Positions 3,193-61,368 of a DNA stretch of 64,000 nt are shown piece by piece (position 1 is the stretch's first letter; each line of letters starts with the position of its first letter). Both the position numbers and the translations under genes were made by a program. The notes below the pieces were generated by a model. The model searched no databases and was not told where the DNA came from. It saw only the letters and a list, made by a program, of their open reading frames with translations. This stretch comes from Glycera tridactyla. Lineage: Eukaryota. The stretch is from the NCBI GenBank assembly GCA_965644265.1, contig OZ286476.1, positions 19,964,001 to 20,028,000 of the forward strand. Direction: 5' to 3'.

Positions 3193-3384
3193 NNNNNNNN
3201 NNNNNNNNNNNNNNNNNNNNNNNNNNNNNNNNNNNNNNNNNNNNNNNNNNNNNNNNNNNNNNNNNNNNNNNNNNNNNNNNNNNNNNNNNNNNNNNNNNNN
3301 NNNNNNNNNNNNNNNNNNNNNNNNNNNNNNNNNNNNNNNNNNNNNNNNNNNNNNNNNNNNNNNNNNNNNNNNNNNNNNNNNNNN
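3193..3384. other. Assembly gap (192 N)
   Basis: N run. Confidence 1.
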
Positions 3385-8334: not shown

Positions 8335-8524
8335 GTTGGTGAAATTTTGGTTCAACCCAATAACAAATCCCACAATGTGAAATTCCTACCATATTGGATG
8401 ATACTTGATGTCACACTGCACCAAGTGATTTCAAAAGTATATTTAAATTGATGGAGCATGCTTCAACTGCAGAAAAAATTGATTATTTCTGATGATTTCA
8501 AGAATAATTCTGCATTATTAGGGA

Positions 8525-13663: not shown

Positions 13664-16552
13664 CACCAGACAGCATCATCACCAATATTACAACTCAACG
13701 TGCTGACTATCGAGCTCCCCACTTCACAAAAGAATTGGAATCACTACAAATCAGTGAAGGCAGCCAAGTGACATTATCATGCTGTGTGGTTGGGACACCC
13801 ATGCCTCATGTTTCTTGGTATCGTAATGAAGACTGTGTGGACTCTTATGCAGACTACAGTACATTATATAATCCCCTCAGTGGGGAATGCAAACTAGAGA
13901 TTATTGATACATTTGCTGAAGATGCAGGACTGTATAGATGTATTGCTACGAATGAAATGGGGCAAGCAACAACTGCCTGTCTGCTTGATGTGATAGGTGA
14001 AAATATGATAAGTGGGAAAAGCACTGTCACAACTTATGATGCACATGGAAACCCAACAGTGAAAACGATTGAAAGTCCGAGAAAGGGTCATAGTCGTGTT
14101 GTAAAGGAAACATGCTGCAAGCCAGAACAAATTGTGACACATAATGTGATGCAAGCCTCGCAAAGTGGTCCCTGTGATCAGCCTCAGCCACATTCTTCTA
14201 GTCATAATGGTTTACCAGAACGTATTGCGATGGAAGACTCCATAGATATGTCCCGGTCAGAGCATGTGACCACGAAAAAAATCACCACACCAATGGATAC
14301 TGGCCAACATAGTGATAGTGTTTTCATTCCCGAGAAGAGAGACCCATTCATGCTTCTCATTGATGCCAACCAGCAGTTGTCTGGTGCCCAACCTATTCAT
14401 CAAAGTGAACTTAATCATAATGTTAGTAGCAATACTCATTTGAAATCAGTTCCACTACTTCAGGGACAAGACAAAATTGGTGATATGGAGTCATGTTTAG
14501 ATGATGAAGTCATTGGAATAACACAACAACGATTGAGCTCTGAGGTGTCTATGATGAATAGCGAGCTACAGCAAGAGATATGTGAAAAACATACCCAAAA
14601 CCATTTTCCTGTTGTCCAAATCGATGGAAAAAAGATGAGGTTTGACATTGATGCACCACTTTCTGTTTGTCACATGGATAATTTGAGTGATATGGACAGG
14701 AAGATTCATGAGTCATGTGTTACTCAGAGATCAGTCACACCATCTGGATTTTTGGATGAGACTGTCCACACGACACATGTCATTAAACGTGCCACCACTC
14801 CGATTGGTTTCCTTGATGAGGCAACAGAAACCACTCAAATCACCCAGAAGTCTCTGACACCTGTGGGACATTTACTTGACGAAACTGTCAAAACTTCACA
14901 GGTGATAAAACGATCCACAACACCCAGACCCGACGTGGATTTAGCTACTCAGCTGTGCATCCAAGAAGCTCCAGGCTCTGTACAATCCCAGCATCTGCTC
15001 CCTGCTAATCAACTGTGCACCACAGGAGCCGCAGCTCCCACTGATCCTCAATCAAGTAGTGCATTGGTATTTTCAAGTGACAGTGCAAAAAATCCTTTCA
15101 TCCAGTTCAAGCCAGATGGGACACCTGCTGTACCCTTCTTCAAAGACTTTGAAAAATTCACAACAGCTGAGACTTCCATGCTGACCAGCTCATTCTCGGA
15201 GTTGTGGGAGCAGCTCCTGAAGCAGATGCAGACAGATTCCACCACCAGTACTGTCACCATGCCTGGAGATGATTTAGTGGCCAGAGCTTTGAATGTCATT
15301 AAACAAACATCTAATGAAACATACCAAATGCTCATGAAGGCTCTCGCTTCTGGAGATATCACATCACCAGCATTACATGTTCTGAAAAACACAATAGAAT
15401 ATTTGTCATCTCAGTCATCTTTATCCCATGTGTCGCTGCCACCTGTGGTAAATACAACGTCGACCAAACAATCAGGTTACATTAGAAAAGAGACGATCAC
15501 CCAGCCTGATGGAACAGTTGTTACTTCAACAACAACCACTCCAGATGACAAATCATTCAAGCCTATTGGACATGCAATTAGTGTACCAACTAAATATGCT
15601 TTGGAGTCTCCCAGGGCAAAGCGGAAGGTGCCCTCTATGGCTGTTCAGTCCAGTAAGATTTTGGAGGACCACAGTGTGGAAAATGCCCACACATTCAAGC
15701 ATTTGACTGTGATTGAGCATACAGACAGTGACTCTGATAGTTGTCACACAACTGCATTACATATGCATCCGACTGGTGACAAATTCAAACCAGTTGAAAT
15801 TCAGGTTCCAATGCCTACTGAGAGAAAACAATCAGCATATCTACAGGCACAATGCCATCATATGCAGACTGAATATTCACCTTTGGAAATGACAATACCA
15901 GTTGGTGGAAGTGAAGGATTAACACCTCAAATAACAAGAGCACAGAACATCACAGCTCAGGTTCCAGAGTCAGCAGCAGCTCCTAATGAGCGTGATACTA
16001 CAACTGTTGAAAGCCTTGACTACTCTGTGACTGAAACATTGAATGTCACTGTAGACCAGCCAGTCCACCAAAGAATTGCATCGCCTCCTACCAAAAAATC
16101 ACATGCTAGTGTTGAACCTAAACCAGATCAAGAAGTTGAGTTGTCTATCCACGGACAGAAACAGGACTTCAAGGCTGTTGAAATGACTGCTCCAGTACTG
16201 AGTAAATCCTCATTACAAGCTTTTCCCACTGGGCATGTAGAATCAGGTGGCCCACCACCAGCAAAAATGATGCCGCCAACGTTTGTTGTTGCCATTGCAC
16301 CACAAATCATCAAGACCGGGGAGACTGCATCTTTCTCTGCACGAGTTAAAGGCTTCCCTTCACCGTCAATAGAATGGCTTTGGCGGAAGGAATGTCTGAA
16401 AGAAGGTAACAAGAAGATCACCTATGACGTTGAGACTGGTGTATGTCGACTTGTCTGGCCTGAAACAACCCCAAGTGACTTTGGAGAGGTGGTCTGTGAA
16501 GCATCAAATCCCCTTGGTACAGCAACCTGCACTGCGAACTTGGTTGTTGTCC
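13664..16552 (+). CDS. Exon 11 (cassette B, 963 codons): Ig, ~760-aa spacer, Ig
   Basis: Acceptor ctctctgcag after a long pyrimidine tract, donor C|GTAAGT at 16553; symmetric phase 1-1. Confidence 0.85.
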
Positions 16553-17295
16553 GTAAGTACTCAGAGTCTTCCACTGAAGCTGAAAAGCATTGCCCACAGT
16601 TGGAATGATATCTGGTTTGGTGCATTGTAGGTAGTTTGGCACACATTAGGGAAGGATGGACCTGAGTTCAGTGAGGATACTGAATGCACTATACTAGCAG
16701 TAGACATTGACAAGTCTTTCTGACATTTCATGGGGCTTCACATTTGATTGAATGTTGGAATGATCAGCTTTCAACTGACTATCACATCTACATTTCAAGC
16801 CTAATCTTTCACCCCTCTTTCTCTACTTTGAACACATCATTCTCTTGCCTTCCATTTACCAAATATGAGGAGTTTTATGAGTGATTGCATGTAACATTTC
16901 CCCGCTTTATTCATGTGTGTATTCAAATTACCAGGAGCTTCAAAATGCCCTCATCCCTGATCTCTTTGTCTTAATCCGAATGACTGAGCTTGTGTAACTT
17001 CTACTTTCCGTTGCATACTTCCAATTCCATCTCCAGCCCACCTCTTGCCATGATAATTGATAAAATGTTTCGCTCTAACAGTTTCATTCACGTTTTGAGC
17101 TGATTATTTATTCTGACCATAGTTGTCACGTATAAATCATTCATTGTGTGGACAAAGATGTTAACTATGATCCCGTGATGTTTTTACCCATTGTTGAATT
17201 GTATGCTCCATCCTGTACCATTAACATTTACCACTCATCATTTCAGGTCTGTTGATATATATGACTAAGAAATGCTTTATTGTTACTCTTTCTAG

Positions 17296-17455
17296 CACCT
17301 GATGCCGAGGTGACTGTAACTGAAAAGACCACATCTGTGAAAAAAGAGAAAATCACAGTGGTTGGTGATCAGGAGACTCGTCTTGTTGAGACCTCTCCAT
17401 CATGGCATCAGCAACTCTTCCCGCAGATGGAAGCTAATGAGGGAACAAATGTCAC
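17296..17455 (+). CDS. Exon 12: linker plus Ig A-strand (PPDAEVTVTEKTT...QMEANEGTNVT)
   Basis: Acceptor ttctag, donor AC|GTGAGT at 17456; phase 1 to 2. Confidence 0.87.
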
Positions 17456-21831: not shown

Positions 21832-22217
21832 GTGAGACATTTTCACAACTTGATGATGGGTTACTGATACCAAAATACACATTGAAAAAGTCTGGTGGGT
21901 TGTGGGTGTTTTCAATTGGTCACATACTCCTGTGGAGGAATTATTGCCTATGCCGTTGTACTACAAGTTTTGATAGATTGGGAATACTTATGCTTTTTTC
22001 TTTATACACAAGGCCAAGCTTGCCCACTAACTATTTTATATGGAGTAAAACCATTTCACATTTCAGATTGATTCATCTGTGTAGTCACATCCCCTCTACC
22101 AAGAGTTTGTCATAACAAATGTTAGTAGTAAGTGAGTTTGATGTGGATTAGATGCTTAGATTTTAACAATCAAGTCCATTCATGCAAGTAATATTTTGTC
22201 TCCACTTTCTGTTTCAG

Positions 22218-22690
22218 TGTTTGAATATGTTGCTGACAGTGAGGAAGCATCTGCCTCTGCTGCTGAATCCATCCCAGAGCGGATTGTCAGTGAAGATGAA
22301 GCTGAATTCATTGAGCGAACCCAGGCTTTCATTGCAAATATGCAGAAACTTCGCCAGGAGCTCCAGGAAGAGCATGTTGAGGAAGAGGAGATTGAGCTCA
22401 CTGAAGAATTCCATGAGGAGACTGTGCAGATGGCTGATGTCAAGTGGCAGATTCCCAAGAAGGCTGTTACCATGGAAATCGAAGTTGCACCAGAGGTAAC
22501 TGAGGAAATCACCACTGAAATTACTCAAGAGGTGATGCAAGAACAGCGTGTTGATGTTGAAATGAGGCGTACCAGCCTACAGCAGCAGATGGAGACCATG
22601 GTTCATGTGCAGCCTGCCCCTGTGGCAGAAGAAGTCACAGAGGAGGTTGTCAGTGAGGCATCTGAAATCACACAGGAACAGCTTATCCAG
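22218..22690 (+). CDS. Exon 18: Glu-rich PEVK-like segment
   Basis: Acceptor tttcag, donor CAG|GTAATT; phase 1 to 0. Confidence 0.87.
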
Positions 22691-23247
22691 GTAATTAACT
22701 CTATTGGGTAGATTCAGATGGCCTCTATTCCTTATCTGTTTACTCGTTTTTTGAAGATAACAGGTTGATTTCTGTTATCCCTGTCATTGCACCTTTACAG
22801 AATAAAATGGATATTTCTTTCTAATGAGCTACCCACTGAATGTTGATCTTCCCACTTGTAGAGTATTCATTAATGACCTACCATGATTTGAGGCATGCAT
22901 TATTGCTATATCCAGGATCCAGGGTTCCATCCCACTGGATACAGATTTCCAGTATTCAAATATCCCTGTGAATAGATCAATGCAAATTCAGTTGTCACTC
23001 AAATCTTTCATATTTGGTTGTAGATGACATAAGTAAATTCAACATTACTTGGCTACACATACTGGCTCAGGTGATGAGATCATGCTGAATTCAACATAAT
23101 GGAAACAGAACTCTAGCTCTAAAGAAAATATACATCCTACTGGGGGAATTATAAAGTCCCGCATTCCAATAGTAGCCTGTATTCAGACAGTTGTGATCAG
23201 AAGGGTTGTATACACAAATTTTCACTCAACGGTTTGCTTTATTCCAG

Positions 23248-25220
23248 GTGGATATGCAGGTTCATGGTGTCCAGGAAAAGCCTGAGATGCAGGCACAGGT
23301 TGTGGAACAGGTTCTTGAACCTGAACAGGTCATGACAGAAGAAGTTCGTATTAGTACTCCTGAGAACATTGAAGAACAGCACATTGTTGTTGAACTTGCA
23401 CAGGGTGTAATGGAAGAGGCGAGAGAAAGCCTTGCAATGACCCAGGAAGCAGCAATAACTGCTGAAATGGCTGAAGAGATTGCTGAGCGCATCCCAACAC
23501 CTGAGGAAATTTCTGAACAAGTTACTCCAATGGAGTTAGTTGTCACCACCTCTGAAGAGGCTAAAGAGAGCCGTGCTGTTCAACAGGAAGAAATGATGGT
23601 GGAGGAAATCACAGAGGATTTCACTGATTGTGTTCCATCCCCAGTTGAAACTTCCGAACAGCAGGTCTTTGTTGAGCTACAGCAAACAGTGTCTGAAGAA
23701 GCCAAAGAGAGTCTAGCAATGATGCAAGTAGAGCATCTTGCAGAAGAAATTGTGGAAGAAGCTGCTCGTGTTCCAACACCCGAAGATATTCAGGAACAAC
23801 AAGTTGTGGTTGAGCTCAGCCAGACAATCGCTGAACAGGCAAAAGAAAGTCGGGCTGTTCAACAAGAAGAAGTGCTCACTGAGGAGCTTGTTGAAGAATC
23901 TGCTGAGCGTATTCCAACCCCAGAAGGAGTACAAGAACAGCAAGTCATCGTTGAACTTGGCCAGACTATTGCAGAAGTTGCAAAAGAGAGTCGTGCTGTT
24001 CAGCAAGAGGAACTGATGACAGAAGAATTGGTGGAAGAATCAGCAGAACGTATTCCAACACCAGAAGGTGTTCAAGAACAGCAAGTCATTGTTGAACTTG
24101 GCCAGACTATTGCGGAAGTTGCAAAAGAGAGTCGCGCTGTGCAGCAAGAGGAACTGATGACAGAAGAATTGGTGGAAGAATCAGCAGAACGTATTCCAAC
24201 ACCAGAAGGTGTTCAAGAAGAACATGTTGTGGTGGAGCTTGGGCAAACAATTTCTGAAGCTGCAAAGGAGAGTAGGGCTGTAACACAGGAGGAATTGATG
24301 GTTGAGGAACTCACAGAGGAGTCCACTGAGCGAATTCCAACACCTGATCAAACAACCGAAGAACAGGTGGTTGTGGAAATGAGTCAGTCAGCAGTTGAAG
24401 CAGCACAAGGTGCTTTAGCTCCAACTATGGAAGAACAGCTCACTATTGATGAGGTCTATGAAATGCTTGAACGAATGCCATCACCAGTTGAAGGCAGTGA
24501 AGATCAAGTCATAGTTGAGCTTGCCAAACATGAAATGGAAGGTGCAAAGCCTTCTTTGGTTGGCATTACTGAGGACCGTGTGTCAGAGGGCTCAGTCGAG
24601 GAGAACATTGAAGAACTCACATCAGATTTCACAGAAGGTGAAGAGATCATTGTTGATCTGTCCAAGAGTGATGTTGAAGCAGCTAAGGAGAGCTACATTG
24701 GCTTTGTTGAGGAGAGCCATCCTGCTGAAGAAGAAGAGGATATATTCTTTGAGGCTCCTGAGCCAGAGCTGGAGGGTGAGGAAGTAACTGTTGATCTCAA
24801 GACAGTAGACATTCGCCAGAAGGCCGAAATGATGACATCCATGCAAGAAGATGTGGTGGAAGTCAGTTGCACAGAAGAAACTGACACTGAATACACTGAA
24901 GAAGAACCAGAAAAAGAAGAGATCAAAGTTGATCTTTCTCAAGCAGTTAGAGAAGAACCGAAGCCCAGCCATGTTGGAACTCAGGAGCGTGTTCTTACAC
25001 CTCAACAAGCAGAAGACTTTGAAGCAGAGCAAGTTACTGAAGAGGAGACCAAAGGTCAGGATGTGGTTGTCGACCTTGGAACCGTTGCGAAGGAAGCTGC
25101 AAAGGGCAGTCTGGTTGCACCATCCCAGGATATTGTTGAGGTCCAGATGACACAGGACGATATCACACCACTTGTTGAAGAGGATACACACAAAGACCAA
25201 GTCATCGTTGATCTTGAAAG
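23248..25220 (+). CDS. Exon 19: Glu/Val-rich exon with about 13 copies of a ~47-aa repeat
   Basis: Acceptor ttccag, donor AG|GTAATC; phase 0 to 2; 141-nt period visible at 23980 vs 24121. Confidence 0.88.
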
Positions 25221-25609
25221 GTAATCAAAATTCATTCAAGTTGCTCAGTGTGACGTTCATGTGTTATTAGCTTCCGATATTTGGTAAATCAATTTTGTGA
25301 CATGGAATGATATCAATCAATATCATCATATACAGTGCAAATTTTGCAGGATCAGAGGATTCCATTTCTTTCTGGAGTATGTTGAATTCACCATGGATAG
25401 AATACTGGCTTGAGCCACTTGATATCATTAGAAAGCATTTTTAAGAGATATAAATTGTTCAAAGGGAATGAATTGTTTGATCGAATTCATGTCTAGCAGC
25501 GTGATCTCAGATTGTAAATTGGTTGTTCACTCAACAGTACCTCTGCTCATTATTTGATATTTGATACATGAGTCATGACCACTTCCTCAATATACATTCA
25601 TATTTTCAG

Positions 25610-25784
25610 TGGTCAGACAATCGAGCAGCCCCTACAGCAAACTGGATGGATGGGTGAAGAGATTCCCCCAGAACTCATTGCAGAAGAGTATGCTGCAAAT
25701 ATCAAGGAGATCCGCATGATCCCAAGTATTGTGATGCCAGAATATGAGCCAGCTGTCATTGAGCGTTACCGTCTTGAAGCGCAG
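25610..25784 (+). CDS. Exon 20: unique segment
   Basis: Acceptor ttttcag, donor CAG|GTAGGT; phase 2 to 0 restores the frame after exon 19. Confidence 0.82.
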
Positions 25785-26094
25785 GTAGGTCTTACACAGC
25801 TGTCTCTTGCTCATTCTCATTCTCATTCAGAGAAAAGTTGCTGGAAACAAATTAGTTTGTTGTCTTGAAAATGTGCTGCACTGTTCATGTTATCCAAATG
25901 TATATATTAGTTGTAGCGTCATTAGAAAATATCTTTTGATTCCCATATTTGTGCTCATTCTTAAAATGTTATCTTCCACATAAGTCGGACAAAATGAAGG
26001 CATTACTACCAGGCTTCAATGTCAGCTTCCAGCCAGTTAAATTGTCAGATATATTATCTTCATGTTGATCATACTCATGTTAGTTAGGCATCTA

Positions 26095-26237
26095 AGCCCA
26101 CTTGAAAACATTTCTGGTTCCAATCATCATGTGTTCAGGGTTTATGAAAGTGATACCTGCAAGGAACAAATCATCTAGCCTTCATAGACCAGGGACACAT
26201 TGCATGAACACACTGGGATTGTAACATGCCATTAAAC
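26095..26237 (+). ncRNA. Intronic structured-element family, copy H2 (hairpin 26129-26200)
   Basis: ATGTGTTC/GGACACAT, GGTT/GACC and TATGAAAG/CCTTCATA stems. Confidence 0.55.
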
Positions 26238-26454
26238 TTCAACCAAACTGAAGTCTGCAGGTTGGTGTAATCCAAAAGCAAGTAACAATAGATCCATATT
26301 CAAAACCTTGACATGTGTCATTATGTGGTGTCTCCGAGCTTGAGATGGTGATTTGTTCTTGGCAAGCAACCATGCTCAGGTTCTGTTGAAAATCAACCTC
26401 TGATGCCAATAGAATATTTCTCAGAATTCATGTTTTGCCTGATTGCAATTCCAG

Positions 26455-26619
26455 GTACACCCAGATCAAGCTCAAGAGGAGGGCATGATCATTAGTGATG
26501 GTGGTTACCTTGAGCAACAGGCTGGCATACAAACCTCAATGAAATACACTGTCTCCCAGCAGCAGGGACAGAAGATCCAAGCTACTGCACAGAAGGCAGT
26601 TCAAGAGGTGACTCCACAG
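26455..26619 (+). CDS. Exon 21: Gln-rich segment (symmetric phase 0)
   Basis: Acceptor ttccag, donor CAG|GTAAGT. Confidence 0.82.
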
Positions 26620-27358
26620 GTAAGTGATTTGATATTAAATGATTAAGTTTCGAAACATTTCTCCTGCATATCTCACTCTATTACCATCACATGGCACCTG
26701 TAGTTTGGTGAATTTTTCTCCCTCACCACCAAAACAGTTGGAAACATTTTTGTGGTGGGCTGAGATTGACAATCCAGATGATATATTTAATTTGCTGATC
26801 CATAATTATTATCTCCATTGACTGGTCTAGCTATGCTCAGACAAGCATCGACCAGATAGGTCCTAGATTCACTTTGAAAAGCTCATCATGGTTGTCTTAT
26901 TATCAGTTGTATGCTCGAAAGAAAAAAAAAACTGACTCTTACATGGATGGCTGTCTGTCAAAATCATGGCATCTTTAGGTAATTATCCTTGAGGATATGC
27001 CTTATTAAATTTGTTCCCAGGACAAGATGGCCACATATGTTGTTGATACCTCTGATTCATCATACTATTGTTAATTCCACTAATGCAAATCATTCACTGT
27101 GTAATTGTTAGCATGGCTCGAGACCCTTGAAGAACCACATACCAGTTCATCCATTCTATATTGGAGCTCAGAAATGCTGCTGTGGGAATTCCTTGAAATG
27201 GAATGGTCATTGGATTGGAGGAAATTCACTAACATTTCTAAGCTAATGAATACACGCCTGACAAAGATGAACACTGTTTGTGAGAGCCTCTTTCATGATG
27301 TAGTGTGTGTGTGTGTGCAGTTTTATTTCTCTCACAATTTACTTTCATGTTTCTGCAG

Positions 27359-27965
27359 TTGAAGATGATGTCAGCTCAGATGGCGCAACAAGTTGTACGT
27401 GCAGCCCAAGAAGTCACAGAAGAACGCGAAGTTGTGACAGAGGTCACTACAGAAGAGATTGAGGTCATCAAGAAGCCGGAGGTCAAGGAAGAGGTCCGAA
27501 GAGAAGTTGTCAAGACTGTACATGAAGTGCAGCTTATGGCACCAGTGTTTGAAGTTCAGCTGTCTGACATCACTGTCATTGACAGTGAAAAGGCATACTT
27601 CGAGTGCAAGGTTGTTGGTGTACCTAGGCCTCAGGTCATGTGGTTTATGGCAGGAGTAGAAATCAAGATGTCTGCCGACTTCCGCATGGAATATACTGAA
27701 GAAGGCTGGGTGCGCATGCTGATCACTGAGGTCCTTCCAGAAGATGAGGGTGAATACACAGTGAAGGCATGGAATGATGCTGGTGTCTGTGTTACTACTG
27801 CATATCTGACAGTCCTTCCAGCTGAGCGGCCATCCCCAGTGACTGAATCAACAACAGTCATTGTTGATCGGAAAGCAACTCGTGAGCACATTGTCTCTGA
27901 AGCATACCGCAAAATGGAAGTTGACATCTCGATGCAAACCAAGAAGGAGATCTCTGTTATTGAAG
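27359..27965 (+). CDS. Exon 22: Glu/Val-rich linker plus Ig
   Basis: Acceptor tctgcag; APVF...FECKVVGVPRPQVMW...EDEGEY; donor G|GTGGGT; phase 0 to 1. Confidence 0.88.
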
Positions 27966-28433
27966 GTGGGTTTTATATCAGCATCCTCCATGACATCAAG
28001 TACCCACCAGACTAGTGTAAAAATTCGAATGATATGGGATGTAGAAGCACATTATTTGATTATCCTTCATGATTACTTGTCATATAATAGATGAGGTGTT
28101 GATGTCCCATTTGTCATGTTGCACCACACAAGTGACACATAGAATGTGTTTCTGTTGTATGCGGGTAACAATGAAATCACCAATATTTCAGTGGGAGTGC
28201 ACAATAAACACTATCAAATAGTTCCTTGAATTGTGAGAATGCATATAAAGATGTGTTCCAAGAAAGGCTATCAACAGTCCCTTCAACATAAGTCCAAATT
28301 CATGTGAACTATGAATGTAGATATCGGTGTTTGGATTCATGGTTCTGATTTAAAATAGGGTCAGTTTTTCTGAAATGTTTTGAACTGATATCACTCATAG
28401 TGAAGTAAAATGGTTGCCTGTTTTTTTTTCCAG

Positions 28434-44320: not shown

Positions 44321-44507
44321 NNNNNNNNNNNNNNNNNNNNNNNNNNNNNNNNNNNNNNNNNNNNNNNNNNNNNNNNNNNNNNNNNNNNNNNNNNNNNNNN
44401 NNNNNNNNNNNNNNNNNNNNNNNNNNNNNNNNNNNNNNNNNNNNNNNNNNNNNNNNNNNNNNNNNNNNNNNNNNNNNNNNNNNNNNNNNNNNNNNNNNNN
44501 NNNNNNN
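44321..44507. other. Assembly gap (187 N)
   Basis: N run. Confidence 1.
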
Positions 44508-45462: not shown

Positions 45463-45613
45463 GATGAAGCTTGAAAATCAGATAAATTTCAATGTCCTCT
45501 AAGAGAATTCATGTTGGGTTTCTTTCCACTGGAACTGCTCATCTCTTTTACACAATCTGTTGCTATTTATCCAAGCATATTGCTCATGATACATGTGCCT
45601 TTCATTGTAACAG

Positions 45614-46228
45614 GAGAGACGAAGACCACGGAAACCACAACGGTAACCAAGACAACCAAGAAGATGGTAACACAGACCAAGCAGGTGCAGGTTGCTAAGC
45701 AGGAGATGAAAGGTGAGGATGATGATGATACAAAGTTTTCTGGTAGTGATGATGAAAAGTCGAGTATCCATAGCGACGAGATATTGCCACATTTCAAGTA
45801 CACAAGCACAGATATTGATGATGTCATGAATAGATTAGCGAAGATTGAATCCGAAAACGGTGATGGCGAGGGAGATGTTGCCAGCGTACGTCCTGATAAT
45901 GGTTCCCCTTTGGAAATGCATGCTGGGATGTTCAATGCCAAAGATAAATCCCCGATGTTCATTGTTCCACTGATATCGCAAGAGGTCACAGAGGGTCATC
46001 CAGTGATTTTCGAAGCAAAAGTTCAAGGTGATCCGCTACCAACAGTGAAGTGGTATTTCGACGAAGAGGAGCTAACAGACACACAGATTTATGAGTTTGT
46101 TTCAACACCAGATGGCATTGTTCGTTTGGAGATACATGAAACGTTCTCGGAAGATGAAGGAGAATACGTTTGTGTCGCAACTAACCCGCATGGCACGTGT
46201 GACACCTCCGCTAGGCTCATATTAACAG
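45614..46228 (+). CDS. Exon 25: Thr/acidic linker plus Ig (symmetric phase 1)
   Basis: Acceptor gtaacag; SPMF...FEAKVQGDPLPTVKW...EDEGEYVC; donor G|GTGTGT; follows a 14.4-kb intron in which I found no other convincing exon. Confidence 0.87.
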
Positions 46229-46944
46229 GTGTGTCCCTATGCTTGCTTCTCAAACCTGGAGACCATTCAACAAAGGCTTCAAGCTACCTCATATCTATAG
46301 ATACATGTCATGGTACATGGCACTATATGGTTATGTGATAACCTGAACTTAAGTTTGATTGTCTCCACTGCAGCTTCAAGAAAATCACCAACAAAATTGT
46401 CCATGATACTTTCCCATTGCATTTGTGTAGTGGATGGTTTTATGGCAAAGAAAGAATTTCAGAATTGAAACGGCATTTCAATTTATTCAGTTCATCAATT
46501 TTACTTGGGTATAATAATCTAAAGAAGGGCTGGAATTGAATCCCAGCTATAAGTTAGCCCTGAGTAAGCATTGGATTTGTTGCCATAGTTTTCTGGAATC
46601 AGATATGGCGGGTCCTGAACTTTGAATCCGTATGATTATAGTTGGTGATTTCACTGAAGTTTGTTGCATATCTACTTGGTCAGTGCATCTCAACTGGATT
46701 GGTACCTTTTAGTTCCAAAGATAGCAACTATTTCAATGGGCTTGTCTGATTAAAAACCTTTATTTTGGCATCCTGCTCCTTGTCAGTGGGTAGGGTGATG
46801 GCCTTGCCACATCAATAGATGACATTTGAATACATAATTCCCACTACATAAAGTTCAGATTGGAAAAGTTCTAGTTACAAGATATGAAGTACATGGTGCA
46901 CACAAGTCAGGCAAGAATTGAAGGAGTGTTTACTCATTCTCACA

Positions 46945-49422: not shown

Positions 49423-50339
49423 GTGATCTCATTGCCAGATGAGCTGAAGGGTTTTACTCTTCAATAAATATGGGTCCAGCTGTATATTTAATGGAAGCTG
49501 GTATCTGCTTTGGTCTATTTCCACTGAAGTTCACTGGAGATCATCAAGACAGATCATAAGAAATTTAATCTGGCCATGAGAGAGACAGCATTATGTATAT
49601 ACTCATTGCTTTGTATTGTATCAACACATTTTGCCCAATATATTTGCTGATTCATTTGCTTTTGCTGATGTAACTTGCTGGTATTTATCAACAATTATAT
49701 GAAATTGGTGCCAGTCTTTAATAGTATCTATTTCAGCATTTCTTCCTCACAGCAAATATGTCTCTTGGGATCTTTGATGATTTTCATCTTTTTCTTGATT
49801 TCTCAACATCTCCTCTTTTATGTTTTCCTCTGGTCATTTTATGATTTCACCTTTGTTTTCCATGATTCAGAATTGGACTATGTCCTTTTTTATTGCTAGG
49901 ACGAAAGCAACATGGAGAATTTACTCCAATTTTGATGCCATATATATTTTAGTTTTATCCTGTTTTTCCAACATCATTTCGATTCTCATATCTTGATTTT
50001 CAGATACCCTCATTTGACCTATTGAAATGTGACAGAAATAGTGATATTAGAATTATAGGTACCGGTAAATCATCAATCATTAGAACTTCTCATTCCTGGC
50101 TTCACATCGGATTGCTGTTGTGAATCAGACGCGTAATTTGGACACACCGTTTTCGTGGATCACTCTAGGGTTCCGTGATGTTATCGGAATCAGGAAATAT
50201 TTTGTACAATAATAAGTTGAACTTGAAACAAAATGTTGTTATTCCTGTCACACTTAAAGGATCCAGTTCATCCTGAGCATTATTTATCCATATCCTGTGT
50301 TGTCATTGTCATGATTTTATGTTGTTTCTTTGCACCCAG

Positions 50340-53300
50340 AACTCCCCCATACCGAACAGTTGACTGTACATGTTGGCCAGCCACAAGAAGTTGCAGAGAT
50401 CACACATGTTACAACACAAGTGGTTACAATGGAGGTCCCAGATCAACCACTGGCACCAGAAACCACACAAATTTCGACGCAGCAGGTGACTGTGGAAATG
50501 CCTGTTCAGGCACTGGCCCCCGTCACTTTGGATATTTCTGTGCCTCAGGTCGAACAAGCACATGTACATATTGTGGAAGAGCCTTCCGCTCTTTCTCCCT
50601 CGGGAAGGTCTGAGTCACCCGAAGAGTTCTATGATACTGAGTCAACTCAGATTGTAACTGTTTCCAAAGTGATGTCTGAAACCAAATCAACGGAAACCAT
50701 GCTAACAACCACAACTGAACAAGTTTCTGATCTCTCCACTGCTGAAGAACTAACAGTAGATGCCACTCAGCAGCAAACTGAACTCAACTTGGGTGTGCGG
50801 GAATCACCTTTAGTCACTAAGATATCTCCACAAGATGTTGTCTTCACAAAAGAAGAGTCGCAAACTCTTCCTGCTCTTGAAAAACCTGAGAATCCAAGAG
50901 TGCAGGATGTACCTGAGCTTGAAAGGGTTGCTCAAGTGGTACACCCTGTTGAGGCCAGGACAGAGCCTCAGAAAGAGGAGTATGTTGTGGAGGTACCAGT
51001 AGGTTTCGATGATACACGAGAAGAGTCCCCAAAGGAAGCAGCTGAAGAACTTGTGCCAACGTCCTTAGACGTTGCCATGACAGTGTTACCAGCAGAAATG
51101 AAGGAAATGTATCAGCAAACAATAGAAGTGAATCCCAAACCGCAAGCTCATGTTGTCCAACAGTTACCTATGGATGCTGGGCAGCAGCCTGAGCAAACTG
51201 TAGTGTTCACACAAGTCGATGGTACAGTACCAAGTCAACAGGTAGCTATGGTTGTTGATGTTAGCCAGCAGAAAGTTCTGACAACGACGGAAACAACGGA
51301 AGTTACTCGAGAGGTCACCACCATGGAGATGGAAGTTGAAGGCAAAAAGCTGCTACAGGAGGTGACTTTTGAAGTTCCTGTTGTAACTGAAGAACCAACT
51401 ACCATGTTTGTAGTTCAGCAGCCTGAGAAACAAGTGACTGAAACATTACTGAAAGAGCCAGTGCAACCTGTTGAGAGACGTCCAGAGGTAACAACAGAAG
51501 TCACTACCAGAGAAATCACAACCATGGAGATGGAAATTGAAGGCAAAAAACAGCTTCAAGAGGTGACTTTCGAAGTTCCTGCTGTAACTGAAGAACCAGC
51601 AACCATGTTTGTAGTTCAGCAGCCTGAGAAACAAGTGACTGAAACATTACCAAAAGAGCCAGTGCAACCTGTTGAGAGACGTCCAGAGGTAACAACAGAA
51701 GTCACTACCAGAGAAATCACAACCATGGAGATGGAAATTGAAGGCAAAAAACAGCTTCAAGAGGTGACTTTCGAAGTTCCTGTTGTAACTGAAGAGCCAG
51801 GGAATATGCTTGTTGTTCAGCAGCCTGAGCAACTAACAGAGGTGCAACCCATTGAAAGACACCCTGTGGTTTTGGAGCCTACAGTTGTTGAGCTTGTGCC
51901 AGCCCCTGACACAGCTATTGGCCCCATCACCCCCACAACACAGATCACTACAGCTACTACAACCATGATAATGGAAGTCGATGGCAGACAACAGCCACAA
52001 GAAGTTACATTTGAGATACCAGTAAGTGAGGAGCAGGTTGTCAGTAAAACAAAAGAAGTGACTGAAACTACATATACTCAAATGGTGACAGCCCTGGAAA
52101 ATATGATGCCTGGAGAACTACAGCAGACATTGGTGAGCCCTCCCAAAGAGGCTGAGCCAACCATGCGAACTGCACTGGAAATACCAGTGCAACAGGTGCC
52201 ATTACCAGAACAAACCATTGCAATTATTCCACTAGATGATACTACAGTGACACAGCAAAGTGCCTTGGTCGTTGATGTGACACAGGACAGACCGATAACT
52301 TTCACCAAGGAAACCGCTACCATGGTGATGGAGATAGGTGACCAGCGTCTTCCACAGGAAGTATCTATGGAGATTCCAGTTCCTACTGAGCATGTGACCA
52401 CGGTACATGTTGTGCCACAGCAAACTGAAATGCCAAAACCCCAGATGCCTATTTTGACTACAACTGAAGTAACTGAAATGCAAGTTGGGGTTTCACAGTT
52501 ACCCCAGCCAACAGTACAACCAGGGATCTCAGCCATTGCTATTACTCAAGAGCAAGTGCCTCGCGAGGTGTCTGAGGTGCATCTTGATGTCACTTCACAG
52601 CAGGTGATCCCAGAAGTTGCTTTTGAAATTCCAATGCCTGTTGGTGATGATGTTATCATGACAAGAGTTATGTCTCCTGCGGATATAAGAGAGATTGTCT
52701 CGTCGCCAGAATTATCAGATGATGCCTTCCACACTCCTGAGGAAGAGCTTCCACCGACCTCACCAACTGAAGCTGCACTCATTGCTGAAGTTACTGAACA
52801 GATATCTTCATTGATCGCGATTGAGCAAGAGAAACTGCCAGAAGGTATGGTTGTGGTTGCACCAGTCCCTGAATCTGAGCAATCCATGGAGATTGGACAA
52901 ATTGTTGTGGGTGGGCGACATATTAGCTTGCAGGCGACAGTCATGCATGAATCTCAACAGGAGATAATCCAGACAGTTAGCAAGTCAACAGAAGAGCTCA
53001 TCTCACAACCCATTGAAAAGCCAGAATCTCCTCAAACCGTTACTGACCAGCCCGAGGAAACATTGGTGGAAATCAAGCCTGTTGTGTCGGAAGTACCCAC
53101 TGAAGTTGGTGACATTGTAGTGGGTGGGAGAAGAATTAGTTTACAGGCTGTGTTAACCCCTGAAATTGTTGCAGAGATAGCCAAGGACATTCCAACACCA
53201 GAGGCACCGAAACAAGTGGTTTCAGAAAAACCATCTGAGGTCACAATGGAGATTCTTGACCTACCTGATACTCATAAGGCTGAAATAGGATCAATCAAAG

Positions 53301-56300
53301 TCAGTGGCCAGCAGGTCAGTCTACAAGCTGTCATAACACCGGAGATATCCAAACCTGATGTCACACCAGAGGAGGTTGCATTGAAACTCACTATGCCTGA
53401 GCCACTGAAACCAACTGATGAAATTCCAAAGGAAAGCAAAGAACCACGAATTAGTGAGGTTATTGTGAGTGGGAGAAGAGTAAGCTTAGTTTCTCCTGAG
53501 CCTGAGTCTGAACCATCAGAAGCTATAGTATTACCCTTGAAGCCAACAGAGCCTATAACCACAGAATTGATATTTGGGCATCGTAAATTCAGTGTGGTAG
53601 CCTACGATAATGAAAAACTCCTTGAACAAGTCAGAGACATTATCTCGAGGGAAGCATTGAAGGCAGCAGTAATGAAACCCAAGGAACAGCTACAGACTGA
53701 ACTGAATGTAGGTGGTGAAAATATCACTATATCTGCTGATAATCCAGAGGAACTCATAAAACAGATCAGGCAAACACTTGAACAAATTCCCCTTGAAATC
53801 AAGCCAGATCAAGTGACCGAAATCAAGCCACTCGAACCTGTTTCTGCCCAACTGAAGCTTGGGGCCCAAGAATTTACCTTCACAACTGAGGATATGGCTC
53901 ACATGGTTGAGCAGATGAAATCTGTGATAGAAAAAAAGAAGGTTGTAGAGAGCCCCGAAACTTTCACTGCAGAGGTTGTCGTTGGTAAGAGGAAGGCCAG
54001 TCTGAAAGCTGAGACAGCACCAGAATTGTCCAAAAAGGTACATGATTCAGTTCAGAGAATGCCTGAGCCTGAAGCCACTGAGCCAATCACAACCGAATTA
54101 TTCATTGGGCCACGTCATGTCAGTGTAGTGAGTGATGACAAGAAAAAACTTGTTGAGCAGGTTACTGTTGTACTTGAACAACAGCCAGTTGCCATGGTCA
54201 GTGAAACACCAGTGAAACCGGTCACTGTTGACATATCAGTCGGTGATGAGGTTGTCAGGATTGAGGGAAGAGATGCCCCAGAGGTGGTTATCAAGATTCC
54301 TGAAGAGATTGCCAAGTTACCCGAGCCCACAGTCAAGAACCCAATTACCACAGAAATGGTGATTAATGAGAAAACCATCGCAGTGGTATCTGAAAGTAAG
54401 GAGAAATTTGCAGAACAGATCCAAAATGTATTTGAACGAGTACCATCCTCCCCAAATAGTGAACCTGTAGCAGCTGAGGTGTGTGTCGGCACTAAGAGAG
54501 TCAGCGTGGTTGCTGCTGATTTCAAGGAGTTAGAGAGCAAGGTGAAAGAGACAATAGAGCAGTTACCACAGCCTCGTTTCCGTCAGCCAGTCTCTACTGA
54601 TTTGGTCATCAGTGGACAAGTAGTAAGTTTTGTTTCCGATAACAAGCAGACAATATTACGTGAGGTTGAAGAGTATTTCAAAAGAGAGACCACAACACGC
54701 ATAGCAGACACAAAACAGACATACTCAACTCAGATGGTTGTCAGTGGCAAGAAAATCAGTGTCATAGCTGAAGATTTGCCCACCATGACAGAGCGAGTGA
54801 AGAAGCTAACTTCCAAGAAACCTAAGCCATCAGAACCAATCACTGCTGAAGTTGTTGCCGGTGAGCAGAAGATTACTTTAGTTGCAGATGACATCCAGAA
54901 ATTGAGTGAGCAGATTGTGGAATTATCTATATCTACTGTCAAAGAAAGTGTAAGTCTGTACAAAGCTGAAGTGATTCTGGGAGATCGTAAGATTGATATA
55001 GAAGGGAAGGATTCAAAGGAACTTACAAGAAAGACACAAGATACTGTCAGGAAGTTACCTAGACCAAAGTTGAAGCAATCAATCACTACTGAGATAGATG
55101 TCGGTGATCGACATGTCACTATTATCAGTGATGATAAGGAGAAGTTAGTGGAGCAGATCCACACCATTGTTCAGCATGCCCCTGTTGCAGTTGTGACTGA
55201 AGAGAAGTTCAAACCAGTCACCGCTGAAATTGCCCTAGGTGAGAAGAAGGTCACTGTTGATGCAAAAGATGCTCCTGAAATAGTCAAAAAGGTTGGTGAT
55301 GCTGTGAAGAAGCTACCCAAACCCAAACCTGACCAATCAATCACTGCTGAAGTAGTTCTTGAAGGTAGAAGAATCAGTATTGTCGCTGATGACAAGAAGC
55401 CCTTGGTAGAGCAACTTCAAGTAGTTCTTGACAAGCAGCCGGTATCAAATCCAGTAGAGAAAGATAAGGAACCAGTCGCTGCAGAAGTCAGCATAGGTGA
55501 AATGAAAGTGAGTGTGGTGGCACAGGACATCAAACAGTTGACTGAACAGATTCGAGAAACTGTACAAGAGCTTCCAGAGCCAGAGAAGGCAGAGTCAGTC
55601 ACCACTGAACTTGTTATCAGTGGCAGGAGAGTGAGTCTGATTGCAGATAGCAAAGAGAAAGCACTGGAACAAATTCAGCATGTTGTTGAACAGACTCCTG
55701 TTGTCACAGAATCAGATTCCAAATGTTTAGCCACAGAGGTCACAATATCAAGTAAGCAAATCAGTATAGTTGCTGAAGATGCTAGTGCACTTATAGGGCA
55801 AATAGAAAAAATCTCACCAGCTCCAGTGATTGAAGCCCCAGTTGTAAGTGCAGAGGTGATTGTTGGTCCTCGGAGGATTAGTGTATCTAGTTGCAAGCCG
55901 GAGGAGTTGGTTGAGCAGATTCAGGAGGTTGTCCATGAGGCAACTTCAAATCCAGGTGAGATAACTCTGCAGGGTAATCCTGGGCCAGTGCAACCAACAC
56001 CAGTTATGGCACCGGAGAAAATTCTCCATGTAGTGAGTGAAACAGTTGAGCCAGTTCAACCTGTCAATCAGGTTTCAGCAGAAATCAAAGTGGCAGATGA
56101 GGTCAGGCATGTTGTTGCACCATCTACTAAGGAACTCGGTGAAAAAGTCAAGGCAGCAGTTGAAACATTACCAGCTCCTACCGTTGAGCAACCAATAACC
56201 ACAGAACTGGTTGTCGGACCACGACGTGTGAGTGTGATCAGTGATGATAGGGTGAAATTGGGAGAGCAAGTGAGTGTTATTCTAGAAGAGCAGCCCATGT

Positions 56301-59300
56301 CTGTGACCAGTCAAGAAGAGATTGCTCCAGCTGAGGCAGAGATCAAAGTAGGTGAACAAACAGTCAAAGTTGTTGCAAAAGATATTCCAGATCTTGTGAA
56401 AAAGGTTGATGATGAACTAAAGGTACTACCCAAGCCTTCGTCAAAATCACCTGTCATGTCAGAAGTGGTGACTCCATCTGGGAAAACTACCATCATTTCA
56501 GATGACACACCAAAATTGCTCGATCAAATGTCAAGCCTGCTTGAGACTGGAGCTGTGCCTACCACTGTTGATCAATTGTGTCAGCCAGTGGCAGGCGAAC
56601 TGAAAGTGGGAACAAAGAAAATCAGTATTGTTGCCAAAAGTTCAGAGGAGCTAGAAAAGAAGGTTGAAGAAACTTTAGAGGTATTGCCTCAGCCACGATT
56701 CAGGCAACAGGTAACTGCAGATTTGATTCTCTCTGGGAGAAGGGTTAGTGTCATTTCAAGTGACAAACAAACTGTCCTGGAAGAAGTCAAGAAAGTTCTT
56801 ACTTTCATAGAGGATGTGAACAAGGCCATTGAGCAACATCCAGCTAGGCCTTCAATAACTCCGCAACCATTGACAGCTAAGATAACGTGTGAGGGAAGTG
56901 AAGTTGACATTGTGGCAGAGACTCCCCAAACCCTGTTGCAAGAGGTGGCAAAATTGAAACCCACTTCTCCAGCCTTGTCTGTTACTGCTTCACTGGTTAT
57001 TGGTGAGAAGAAAGTTGATTTAGTGAGTGAGAACATTCCCAAGTTGGTAGATCAGATATCAGAACTAGTCAATCTGGAGGAGGTCCAGCCAGCTGAAGAG
57101 ATGCAGCAACCAGTTCATGCCACTATTACCCTAGGTGATCAGATCACTTGCTTTGATTCAAATGGTATCAGTGAGCTTGTGAAGAACATACAAGAAACAG
57201 CTAAGAATATTCCCAAACCTGAAGGAAGACAGTCTTTTTCAGCTGAGGTTGTTGTTGGTGATAGGCTCCTAGATATCATTACTGATGACAAAGACAAGCT
57301 TGGTGATCAGGTTGATAAGATTTTGAGGCAGTCCCCAATGTCACTTGTCAAAGGGAAGTCACCAGAACGTGTCACTGCAGAATTATCTGTTGGTGATAAA
57401 AAGGTCACTGTTGAAGCCAAAGATAAACCGGATCTTCTCAAGAAAGTGACAGATGCTGCTAAGAAACTCCCAAAGCCAAAACCACAACAGTCAGTCACAA
57501 CGGTTGCTGTTATTGACAACAAACAAGTGAGTATTGTGGCGAAAGACAAACCACAACTCATCGAGCAGCTACAATTTGTGATAGATCAGAAGCCAGAGAA
57601 ATCTCCTGTAGAAAGTATCCCTGATGTAGTAGCAGCTGATTTGAAAGTAGGTGACAAGGAGGTGAGTATTCTTGCAAAAGATGTAAAAGAGTTAGAACAG
57701 AAAGTTACTGAATCCATGACTAGTGTAGAACCTGGTGTAGGCCCTGTGAAGATTGATGTGATGGTCAGTGGTAGGAGGGTTAGTATTGTAAGTGATACAA
57801 AGGATGTAGTGCTTGAACAGGTCAAGAAAGTACTAGAAACAGAGCCTGTCACTGATGTACAAGAACCCACGCAACCAGTGTTGACAGAAGTCACTGTTAG
57901 TGGACGTAGAGTTAGCATTTTTGCTGAAGATACCACTACTCTGCTTGAAGAAGTGAAAACAGTTTTGACCCAGAAGAGAGATGAACCCTGTGCTCCAGCA
58001 TCTGTGCAAATGGTCATTGGGCCAAAAAAGGTGACATTGGTATCTGATGACACCCAGAGCTTGATCAGTCAGGTTCAGGAAGTCATTGAGCCTTCCAAAC
58101 CCGAAGAAGTCGCACATGCTGAGATAACAGTTGGTGATCACAAGACTAGTGTAGTTGCCAAGGATGCTAAAGATTTGGAAGTGCAGATCAAATCACAAAT
58201 CCCTGATTTGCCAGAACCGACAGAGCAACAGCCATCAATTTCTGAGATCACTGTAGGCCCAAGGCGTACGAGCATTGTCACTGATAGTAAGGAGGTTTTC
58301 AGTGAACAGGTTGAACTAGCACTCGAGGATGTTCCCAGTAAGCCACATGAAGGTCCCCAGCTGGCAAAAGCTGATATATCGGTTGGTGAAAAGAAGCTTA
58401 GTTTAGTTGCTGCTGACATCAAACAATTAGAGACTCAGATTGAAGAGATTGTTCATGAAGCTCCGGAACCCACTCAGGGAGAGGTGGTCCATGCTGAAAT
58501 TGAGATTGGTAGCAAGAAATTGAATATTTCTGCTGATAGCAAAGAAGTCTTCACGAGTAAGATGGCACATGCAGTTGAGGAGATACAGATTATGGTTCCT
58601 GACAAAGCTGAAGTTGTCCAGGCAGAAATACAGGTGAAAGATCGCAAGGTTAGTGTGGTTGCTGCCAGCATTGAGCAGCTAGGGGATCAAATCAAGGAGT
58701 TGGTTGTTCAGCTCCCAGACATCACCCCAAGCCAGCCAGTGACTGCAGACATTATGGTTGGTTCTCAAGAGATGATTATTGTATCAGACAATAGGGACGT
58801 CTTCACAAGTCAGGTTGAACACCTTGTTGAGAAGATACCAGAAACTTCAAAGACGCCACAAAGGGTTGAGGCTGATCTACTCATAGCTGATCATGAGGTG
58901 AAGGTGATAGCTGTCAATACACAGCAGCTGCAACACCAGATAAATGAAATCGTTTCAGAACTTCCAGCTCCAACTCCATCTCAGCCATTGACCACAGAGA
59001 TTACCATTGGTCCACAACAATTGAACATTGTTGCAGATAGTACACAGGTGTTCACTGATCAATTTGAGAAGGTGTTTGAACAAATACCTGCCGAGAAAAT
59101 CAAACCAATTGAAGCACAGATTTCAGTTGATGAGAAGAAAATTAGTTTGGCAGCAGATACTGTTAAGGAAATACAGGAGCTAGTGAAAGAGGAAGTTGGT
59201 AAATTACCCTCAGCCACCGTTGAAAAACCTGTTGTCACAGAGGTCACTATTGGTGAAAGACGCGTTAGTATCATTTCTACAGTCTCACAAAAAGTGGTAG

Positions 59301-60785
59301 AGCAGGTGCATACTGCGATTGAACATCTTCAGGAAGTCAAACCAGTTGAGCAGAAACAGGTGTCAACAGAGGTTGTGATTGAAGGTCGAAAGGTCAGCTT
59401 GATTGCACCAGATACCGAGACACTGATGGATGAAGTGAGTAAAGTGGTTGAGCATGTCACCAAACCTGCTGAACCAGTGATCACTGAACTAGTCATTAGT
59501 GGGCGTCGTGTAAGTCTTGTGGAAGCACAACCCATGCTAGAACAGGTTGAAGTGAAACCAATGGAGCCAAAACCAACTGAAAAAGTCACTGAACAACCAG
59601 AACCTCAGAAAAAATTGAAACGTCGTGTGAGTTTCAAGGCTGAAGCCCAAGTATTTTATCATTCTCCAGAATCAACTGAGATAGTTGCAGAGGCGGTCGA
59701 ACCTACTGATGTCACCATGCCAGCTGCACAAATGCCTGATATTGTCACAGCAGAGCTTGGAGAATTCAAATTAGGTGAAAAGCGAGTGAGCCTCACTGCT
59801 GTGGTCCTGCCAGAAGGGATGGAGGAAGTGCCAAAAGAGGTAACACTGCCAGTTGAATCAGTCACTTGTGTGACTGAAGCTAAACCTGTTGAAATTGGAC
59901 TGGGTGAAACAGCAACGATTATGGTCACTCCTTCAGGAGACATTAAGATGGAACCAGAACAGATTTTGCCCTCTGCAATTAAGCCAGATGATGAATATGC
60001 AGTTTCATATCCCAAGGAGATATCATTTGAAGAAGTGATTGAAGATATCTGGGCTGGAGCACAACCTGATGATCAGCCAGAAGACAAAAAGCAGCCAGAA
60101 TATATCACAGAAGTTGTCCAAGCACCTGCTGTGCAGGAAGTCCCAGATGAAACAGCAGTCAAACAGGAGGTCTTGGTCACTGAGAAACCTCAATCCATGC
60201 TGCCAGAGGCTGACAAACCAAAGGATGAGTATACTGTTTCTTACCCATCGGAAGTTTCATTTGGTGAAGAGATAGAGGACATTTGGGCTGGTGCTCAGCC
60301 TGATGAAAAACCAAGCATGCAACAGAAGCCTTCAGACACAATGGAAATGGTGGAACTCCCCTCAGAAGTTCTCAAACCCCATGATGTGACTATTGTGAAA
60401 GGAACTGAAGAAGGACCATTTGTAGAACTTCCCGCTACTCCATTGGCAGTTGAACCCAGTAAAGATGTAGTGGATGCATATACTTCAGAAGTAAGTGTAG
60501 AAGATGTCTCAGATGTTTTGCCTGCTGCCGAAGGAGTTGAAGTAGTAGCCGAAATTCAGATTCCTCAAGAGCATCTTCCCATGGTAGAGCAGGTGGAAAC
60601 TTTGCCAGTGATTGAAGGTACCGAGCAGAAGCCAGATGTCGTGGTGCCAGTGTTTGAAGAGAGTCTACCATCAGAAACAGCACAAGTGGAAGTGATGACG
60701 CATCCCCAGGATGTCACTCCATCGGATGTTCAGCCGACGGAGATGACGGCCGCCATCCCCCCATCCGAACAACCCTCGGAAGAAG
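50340..60785 (+). CDS. Exon 26: 10,446-nt giant exon (3,482 codons); PEVK-like region plus about 50 novel ~40-44-aa repeats
   Basis: Uninterrupted 3,510-codon ORF; acceptor cacccag after a pyrimidine tract; composition turns intron-like right after G|GTACCC at 60786 (weak donor, so the 3' boundary is less certain). Confidence 0.85.
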
Positions 60786-61368
60786 GTACCCAAACCTATT
60801 CCTTCTTTTGTTGTAAAATGTTAATTCCCCAGTTTATAATCTTTTTTTCTCATACATTTTAATCATTCAATTTTAAGATATCACTGTTAATATGATATAA
60901 TCATGAAAACTTTGATGTTAGGATAAAGGTATCACAACCGTTCTTGTGGGTTGCACGAAACTGCCTTTTGTAGCCATTTGTTTTTCTTGCATGAATTACT
61001 GAACTTCTTTTGCAGCCGCGATGCTCTGCGGCATTGATCTACATTCAACTGCATATTTGAAACTCTGCTGTCTAAAGCATGACTACTTCTTCATTCTTTG
61101 ACTCAAGAGAAAGACAAATGACAGTTAACATATCATAAAAGCGACACACTTCACCTCCTGAAAAATTAGGATATACGACTACTGACCAAGATAGCTTTGA
61201 TAGCCTATTGGCTACCATTAGATATTTAGTTTCTTCTCAAGCTCATATACATCCCAGAAATGAACTTCACAATACAGGTAGCAAGGATATGCTAACTCAG
61301 TCCCTGAGCTGAAAAGCACATGCAGTCAGGGAAGGGCACATCCAGCTAAATATGAAGTGCCAAAAAGG

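Follow-up and report, generated by a model that had tools for sequence, protein, structure and literature searches.

A giant exon in a titin-like gene of Glycera tridactyla carries 47 repeat units that are predicted to fold in pairs

We describe a tandem array of short repeat units encoded by a single giant exon on the plus strand of a 64-kb stretch of DNA from Glycera tridactyla (the window, in whose positions all coordinates are given unless otherwise stated). The exon lies in a titin-like gene, its units come in two alternating subtypes, A and B, and we found no relative of them in the protein libraries searched. Each unit is predicted to form a beta-hairpin followed by a helix, and a B unit with the A unit that follows it would make one small alpha/beta domain. 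On balance we think that the exon is spliced into a titin-like transcript and probably encodes about 23 such paired domains, acting as an elastic or spacer segment of the protein. The features on which this reading stands are the following:

50340..60785, plus strand: giant coding exon of 10,446 nucleotides and 3,482 codons, predicted from the acceptor and donor letters to be in phase 1 at both ends
53543..59593, plus strand: core array of 47 predicted beta-hairpin plus helix half-units of about 42 amino acids, alternating B and A, about 23 predicted domains of two half-units
52898-52945, 53111-53191, 53294-53329 and 53450-53494, plus strand: four degenerate units upstream of the array (residues 857, 928, 989 and 1041), partial profile matches
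59768..59863, plus strand: one degenerate unit downstream of the array (residue 3147)

A hidden Markov model (HMM) of the unit was built from 21 hand-picked units and run against the whole product of the open reading frame (ORF) containing the exon, where the plus strand stays open over 3510 codons (50330-60862). It returned 47 full units of about 42 residues between ORF residues 1072 and 3088 (window 53543-59593). All 26 units outside the seed were recovered, nearly all with per-domain E values from about 1e-4 down to 8e-17 and the weakest, at residue 2259, with 3e-3, and in 200 residue shuffles of the array no domain scored below 1e-3 with the same HMM. The four degenerate units upstream, 55-71 residues apart, match profile columns 6-34 with E values from 2e-4 to 0.15; in them the hairpin is well kept and the helix is weak. 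The one downstream (E 0.006) is mainly a hairpin. A preliminary description of this DNA had counted about 46 full and about six degenerate units within 52885-59815 (residues 852-3162), and these counts, its coordinates and its unit consensus are in line with the HMM matches and the column profile.

The alternation of the two subtypes is seen in the mean identity between units, which is 29% at lag 2 vs 23% at lag 1. The type A consensus is roughly P-I-T-T-E-L-V-x-G-x-R-R-V-S-V-I-S-D-D-K-x-K-L-x-E-Q-V and the type B consensus roughly P-V-x-A-E-I-x-V-G-x-x-K-V-S-V-V-A-K-D-x-x-E-L-x-K-K-V...L-P. The spacing follows the same alternation: the connector from a B to the next A unit is Pro-rich and exactly 8 residues long at 18 of the 22 junctions, and the linkers from A to B, rich in Pro, Glu and Val, range from 5 to 43 residues (mostly 7-12) and carry all the long insertions. 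Neither the alternation nor the fixed connector formed part of the preliminary description. Since residues 2471-2590 are irregular, with three type A units in succession, the count of about 23 domains is approximate. The longest of the linkers is:

55946..56074, plus strand: Pro-rich inter-domain linker of 43 residues, leading from an A half-unit to the B half-unit after it

Unit identity peaks again, reaching about 32%, at lag 8 and once more at lag 16. The peak at lag 16 is explained by two old duplicate blocks, recognised from unit identities and silent sites:

54080-56185 (units 4-19) and 56186-58225 (units 20-35), plus strand: old duplicate blocks of 16 units each

In agreement, the connectors QPRFRQ and KPKP(D/Q)QS recur 16 units apart. 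The best pair across the blocks, units 4 and 20, shares 69% protein identity, with a proportion of differing silent sites (pS) of 0.85 and a proportion of differing non-synonymous sites (pN) of 0.18. Between units in general, silent sites are saturated (pS 0.72-0.75) and pN is about 0.44, while Tandem Repeats Finder (TRF) detected no DNA repeat within the array. The absence of a DNA-level repeat, together with saturated pS and lower pN, argues that the repeats are old and kept at the protein level; judged from these sequence comparisons, the amplification of the units is old and selection has preserved their protein sequence.

The limits of the exon were read from the letters. The predicted acceptor is of the polypyrimidine/AG type (ttgcacccag before the first exon letter A, at 50339/50340) and the donor, at 60785/60786, reads GAAG before gtaccc. 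As the exon is in phase 1 at both ends, skipping it would preserve the reading frame. Logan contig sets from two studies, under two organism labels, contain 40-90% of the 31-mers of the array stretch; they are small (49-88 Mb) and look like transcriptome assemblies. When aligned to 54950-60949, these contigs cover the exon there with at least 99% identity and zero indels, and none of those aligned enters the intron after 60785. One contig, of the set X1, matches up to 60785 and continues with 27 letters that are absent from the whole window. This change of sequence exactly at the predicted donor indicates splicing there and implies that at least the X1 run derives from RNA. Among the public contigs we counted 36 single-base differences, 14 synonymous and 22 non-synonymous, which gives a pN/pS of about 0.47 from these small numbers. 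That the exon is not functional coding sequence, being instead a decaying or untranslated repeat exon or an artefact of assembly, seems to us very improbable: such an origin would fit the want of homologues in very large protein libraries, but it is hard to reconcile with a frame open for 3,510 codons, with the near-identical, indel-free coverage of the array by contigs of two studies, with splicing at the predicted donor or with pN below pS. As a separate observation, the 27 spliced-on letters read in frame V-E-E-E-F-F-D-A-P, an FFAT-like motif (of the VAP-binding type) with which the next exon begins.

The fold of the units was predicted with AlphaFold2. For the pair, an alignment (A3) of 22 non-overlapping B+A pairs was used and the first of them was folded:

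55205..55465, plus strand: modelled B+A pair of 87 amino acids, with predicted strands at pair residues 5-11, 14-20, 46-52 and 55-61 and helices at 23-36 and 64-77

The model has a mean predicted local distance difference test (pLDDT) of 82.8 and a predicted template modelling score (pTM) of 0.64, and all five models are concordant with pLDDT of at least 80. The order of its elements is beta-beta-alpha-beta-beta-alpha. Across the 22 pairs the predicted core positions, which are alternate residues in the strands and positions i, i+3/4 in the helices, are hydrophobic in a fraction of 0.9-1.0, and this is kept though the units are mutually only about 25-30% identical; Pro is confined to connectors and linkers. 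A longer piece of four units, A-B-A-B, folded from an alignment of paralogous four-unit pieces, gave two strands of 7 residues and a helix of 13-14 residues for each unit, with a mean pLDDT of 61.8 and pTM of 0.38; pLDDT fell below 50 only in the two A-to-B linkers and reached 65-76 in the central B-A pair. The fixed connector of 8 residues and the hydrophobic core pattern support the B+A register independently of AlphaFold. We conclude that the half-units most likely fold in pairs, B then A, into about 23 small domains, each predicted to comprise a four-stranded sheet and two helices, in a two-layer alpha/beta arrangement according to the best structural matches.

In this sense, the hairpin and amphipathic helix that the preliminary description had assigned to each unit are recovered by AlphaFold2 in every unit and fit the core pattern, and the Pro-rich linkers that it placed between units are borne out by the distribution of Pro. 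Its further proposal, of a new small mechanical module folding singly or in pairs, divides in two: pairwise folding is now backed by the confident pair model and the connector length, and a function as a spring or ruler remains something that we infer.

We propose that the array would work as a chain of about 23 alpha/beta domains on variable linkers, connected in series as an extensible elastic or spacer segment. While the force is low, the domains would act like beads strung on flexible linkers. Under load, they would open at a lower force than Ig domains, which is expected from a domain with a strand at its start and a helix at its end: a helix peeling or unzipping geometry, as in spectrin, opens at lower force than the sheared terminal strands of Ig. 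Once fully unfolded, the 2017 residues of the array would extend to a contour length of about 0.7 micrometres. In addition, a basophilic kinase could tune the stability of the domains through the RRxS motifs of the type A half-units. Residues 852-3162 contain 13 RRxS sites, where shuffled sequence would give 0.15. Eleven of them belong to the core array and all occupy the same place in type A half-units, the turn and second strand of the hairpin; of the other two, one lies in a degenerate unit upstream and one in a KRRVSF motif. The KRRVSF motif also carries an RVxF-type pattern; RVxF is a docking pattern of PP1.

59618..59635, plus strand: KRRVSF motif just after the array, found by regular expression, with an RRxS site and an RVxF-type pattern

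Several points weigh against the proposal of folded domains in an elastic or spacer segment. All the structural evidence comes from AlphaFold2 on a shallow alignment made only of paralogous repeats of one protein; the four-unit model is just moderately confident; and the packing of the two half-units against each other is deduced from confidence values and linker lengths. The composition of the array (V 14%, E 12%, K 9%, P 7%, with a net charge of -97 over 2017 residues) resembles that of PEVK segments and would be compatible also with a spring that is partly disordered. The excess of RRxS sites was inherited with the repeat, hence the sites are not independent events, and the polymorphism ratio is that of only moderate constraint.

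Some of these points lead to a different explanation, namely that the array is a PEVK-type entropic spring, disordered or only transiently structured, whose periodic amphipathic pattern leads AlphaFold to over-predict a fold. We regard this as unlikely. Besides its acidic, PEVK-like composition, the array lacks Trp and is nearly free of Tyr and Phe; the low pLDDT of the four-unit model and the pN/pS value would likewise suit disorder, and the syntenic giant exons of two other species, described below, carry plain low-complexity acidic repeats. However, a disordered chain would not be expected to keep its hairpin-helix core positions almost invariably hydrophobic through the saturation of silent sites, nor to confine Pro to the linkers and hold the connector within each pair at 8 residues, and the pair model is confident in five of five predictions. 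We therefore retain the folded, paired domains as our preferred reading.

A further possibility is that the units are independent mini-domains of about 42 residues, or that they bind between molecules or along a filament, so that the array would be a nebulin-like ruler or scaffold and its super-repeat of 2, 8 and 16 units would mirror a filament periodicity. The hierarchy of 2, 8 and 16 units is real, and the helices leave uncovered one face of the predicted sheet, to which a partner could bind; in the tombusvirus protein p19, to which we return below, the equivalent sheet face binds RNA. Yet old duplications of blocks account for the peaks at lags 8 and 16, inter-domain linkers that vary so widely in length fit a ruler poorly, a lone hairpin plus helix of 42 residues buries little core, and no known binding motif was found. 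A ruler or scaffold thus appears improbable to us, more so than the disordered spring, and paired domains in series account better for the array.

Searches for relatives gave almost nothing. With Pfam hmmscan, neither the whole 3510-residue product nor any of the 47 units matched a family at threshold; the only hits were sub-threshold chance matches, to CIDE-N (18.5 bits vs a cut-off of 23.5) and PDZ_4, and the array has no match at gathering score to I-set/Ig, Fn3, Titin_Z, nebulin repeat, PPAK/PEVK, spectrin or Xin. Sequence searches of the PDB returned only noise (de novo designs and CopZ at E of at least 0.03), a word-indexed protein search with array residues 1072-3088 found none among proteins of 0.55-1.75 times the query length, and an ESM Atlas feature search gave no usable match. 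When the unit profile was run against 1.84 billion representative proteins, the sole match was a fragment of a bacterial metal-transport ATPase with three HMA domains (E 7e-5). In a local control the array scores 1593 bits on itself under default HMMER filters, so the blank library result is not an artefact of filtering; the library lacks this species' own product and its coverage of close relatives is uncertain. By structure, Foldseek found no PDB match at E of 0.001 or below with either the four-unit or the pair model, and a search of the atlas by shape gave only unnamed clusters or clusters of unrelated families, with template modelling (TM) scores of 0.50-0.65. No such module is described in the literature on annelid and invertebrate connectin repeats that we covered, which did not extend to earlier Japanese studies of connectin-like proteins in polychaetes. 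The view in the preliminary description that the repeat is neither Ig, Fn3, spectrin nor nebulin and belongs to no named family has thus held through the profile and fold searches, the weak HMA match being the only one of its kind. With its supported units, conserved core, fixed connector and confident predicted fold, the unit pair may be regarded as a candidate new repeat-domain family.

The surroundings of the exon place it in a giant gene of the titin-like kind (connectin/sallimus type), as judged by exons with I-set Ig domains, interruptions by repeats, a common strand and collinear orthologues. Ig-bearing ORFs span 20-46338 of the window, and I-set exons together with acidic repeat exons lie upstream of the array exon. 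Collinear orthologues of the gene, with 35-55% identity, were found in contigs of two other species. Long contigs of ENA metagenome assemblies carry homologues of the Ig-spacer-Ig exon at 7714-8448 with 46-70% identity, the closest at 70% and 64%, and a homologue search with the Ig exon at 45511-46335, just upstream of the array exon, found nothing. The synteny walk covered two species that are more distant than these 70% and 64% relatives. In the first, species L (ERZ25069859), Ig exons and a 1792-residue ORF of acidic repeats run collinear to window exons 7714-28012 at 35-52% identity, and further along an Ig exon is followed by a 4941-residue ORF at the syntenic position. In the second, species M (ERZ25767047), the order is a 1047-residue ORF, a 1720-residue ORF, two Ig exons and a 3041-residue ORF.

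The two syntenic giant ORFs (L004:12117-20693 in species L; L009:1-6089, minus strand, in species M) were read over their first 2859 of 4941 and first 2029 of 3041 residues, respectively. The module HMM matched nothing in these parts, and BLASTP of the 2859-residue piece against the array exon found no match; what was read consists of low-complexity acidic repeats, unrelated to each other and to the array. Together with the blank library, the lack of the module in these parts suggests that it may be confined to the lineage of this animal, and that this exon position changes its repeat content quickly and is a putative repeat hot spot. We also considered hairpin-like motifs in the N-terminal part of the exon and in the exons of the other species as an ancestral form of the module, and dropped them for lack of significant similarity.

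Other observations concern the same gene. In the window, the acidic exon group at 22196-28012 carries E/V/Q-rich repeats of about 45 residues followed by I-set, and is divided into several exons; its counterparts are single ORFs of 1792 residues (L002:11073-16448) and 1720 residues (L008:2250-7412), which points to gain or loss of introns in a conserved part of the gene. In species L, residues ~930-1710 of the 4941-residue ORF (L004 ~14900-17300) repeat the C-terminal part of the 1792-residue ORF once more, either through segmental duplication or as an artefact of the assembly. Introns of the gene contain two runs of N, at 3193-3384 (192 bases) and 44321-44507 (187 bases). Outside the array, the giant exon itself contains:

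50340..52884, plus strand: N-terminal part of the exon, T/E/V/Q-rich and without the module (no significant HMM match)
51315-51833, plus strand: recent tandem repeat of 201 nucleotides (67 amino acids), 2.6 copies, 93% matches (TRF)
59864..60785, plus strand: acidic C-terminal tail of the exon, from the translation
59990-60070 and 60224-60304, plus strand: two copies of a DEYxVSYP...IEDIWAGAQPD motif in the tail

The 201-nucleotide repeat is far younger than the module array in the same exon, and the only Trp residues near the array are in the two DEYxVSYP...IEDIWAGAQPD copies.

A bolder reading goes beyond paired domains in an elastic or spacer segment. It holds that the array is a taxonomically restricted new folded family of about 23 p19-like domains, arisen when a beta-beta-alpha half-unit multiplied and paired up within a giant exon that evolves fast, which would form a kinase-tunable spring unfolding at low force and a third elastic class of titin, in an exon that is a lineage-specific repeat hot spot. 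We put this forward as a tentative possibility, on the doubtful side. Models of titin elasticity rest on two types of element, chains of Ig/Fn3 domains and disordered sequences of the PEVK or N2B type; if the bolder reading is true, an array of small alpha/beta domains with another pulling geometry would constitute a third titin elastic design. The obliquely striated body-wall muscles of the source group work over very large length ranges. Furthermore, the array looks like a clean case of the birth of a domain by repeat amplification, in which two homologous half-units give one domain. At 87 amino acids the domain is short, confidently predicted and easy to express, which makes its fold and its mechanics directly testable.

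Among known folds, two bear some likeness to the predicted domain. For the HMA domain, hhalign places 32 columns of one unit on HMA residues 30-61 with a probability of 69.5%, a segment that would correspond to strand 2, strand 3 and helix 2 of the domain. On paper, reasoning from the order of the elements and without coordinates, beta-beta-alpha-beta-beta-alpha is a circular permutation of the ferredoxin-like beta-alpha-beta-beta-alpha-beta. However, the array has no match to Pfam HMA (PF00403), only half a domain is aligned, the order of the topology differs and the array, with 7 Cys in 2017 residues, shows no CxxC metal-binding motif in the unit sequences read. We therefore rejected the array as an HMA member: because the first strand-loop-helix of HMA is unmatched and CxxC is absent, the match reflects the same supersecondary motif and not membership. 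The second is the core of tombusvirus p19, a suppressor of RNA silencing (PDB 4jk0, 1r9f and 1rpu), which the predicted fold of the pair resembles. p19 is a homodimer with N-terminal reading-head helices, whose Trp 'brackets' measure the length of small interfering RNA (siRNA). With an identity of 10-11% and no Trp in the array, we did not assign it to the p19 family.

Within titin itself, the Ig/Fn3 chains are also small domains arranged in tandem and in series, and they share with the array, whose folding is predicted, the same protein; the unfolding and refolding of Ig/Fn3 domains adds to titin extensibility. They differ in that the domains of the array would be alpha/beta, of about 85 residues and built from two half-units, and that one exon encodes them all, against about one exon per Ig or Fn3 domain. 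The array domain would, moreover, end in a helix, from which a lower mechanical stability than that of Ig domains may be expected. Elastic repeats specific to a lineage are found in the PEVK of vertebrate titin, in the SEK and PEVK of crayfish I-connectin and in the PEVT, BLUE and further repeat regions of C. elegans TTN-1. The array shares with such segments a long run of short repeats between Ig regions, a very large exon, a P/E/V/K-rich composition and variation among lineages. Those segments, in contrast, are described as disordered or as polyproline or coil springs, and the array has a strict hairpin-helix pattern and a predicted alpha/beta fold. The architecture of the domain thus has precedent and the family has none; the array is of a known kind, the lineage-specific repeat segments of giant titin-like proteins, and what is new here is that its repeats apparently form folded domains.

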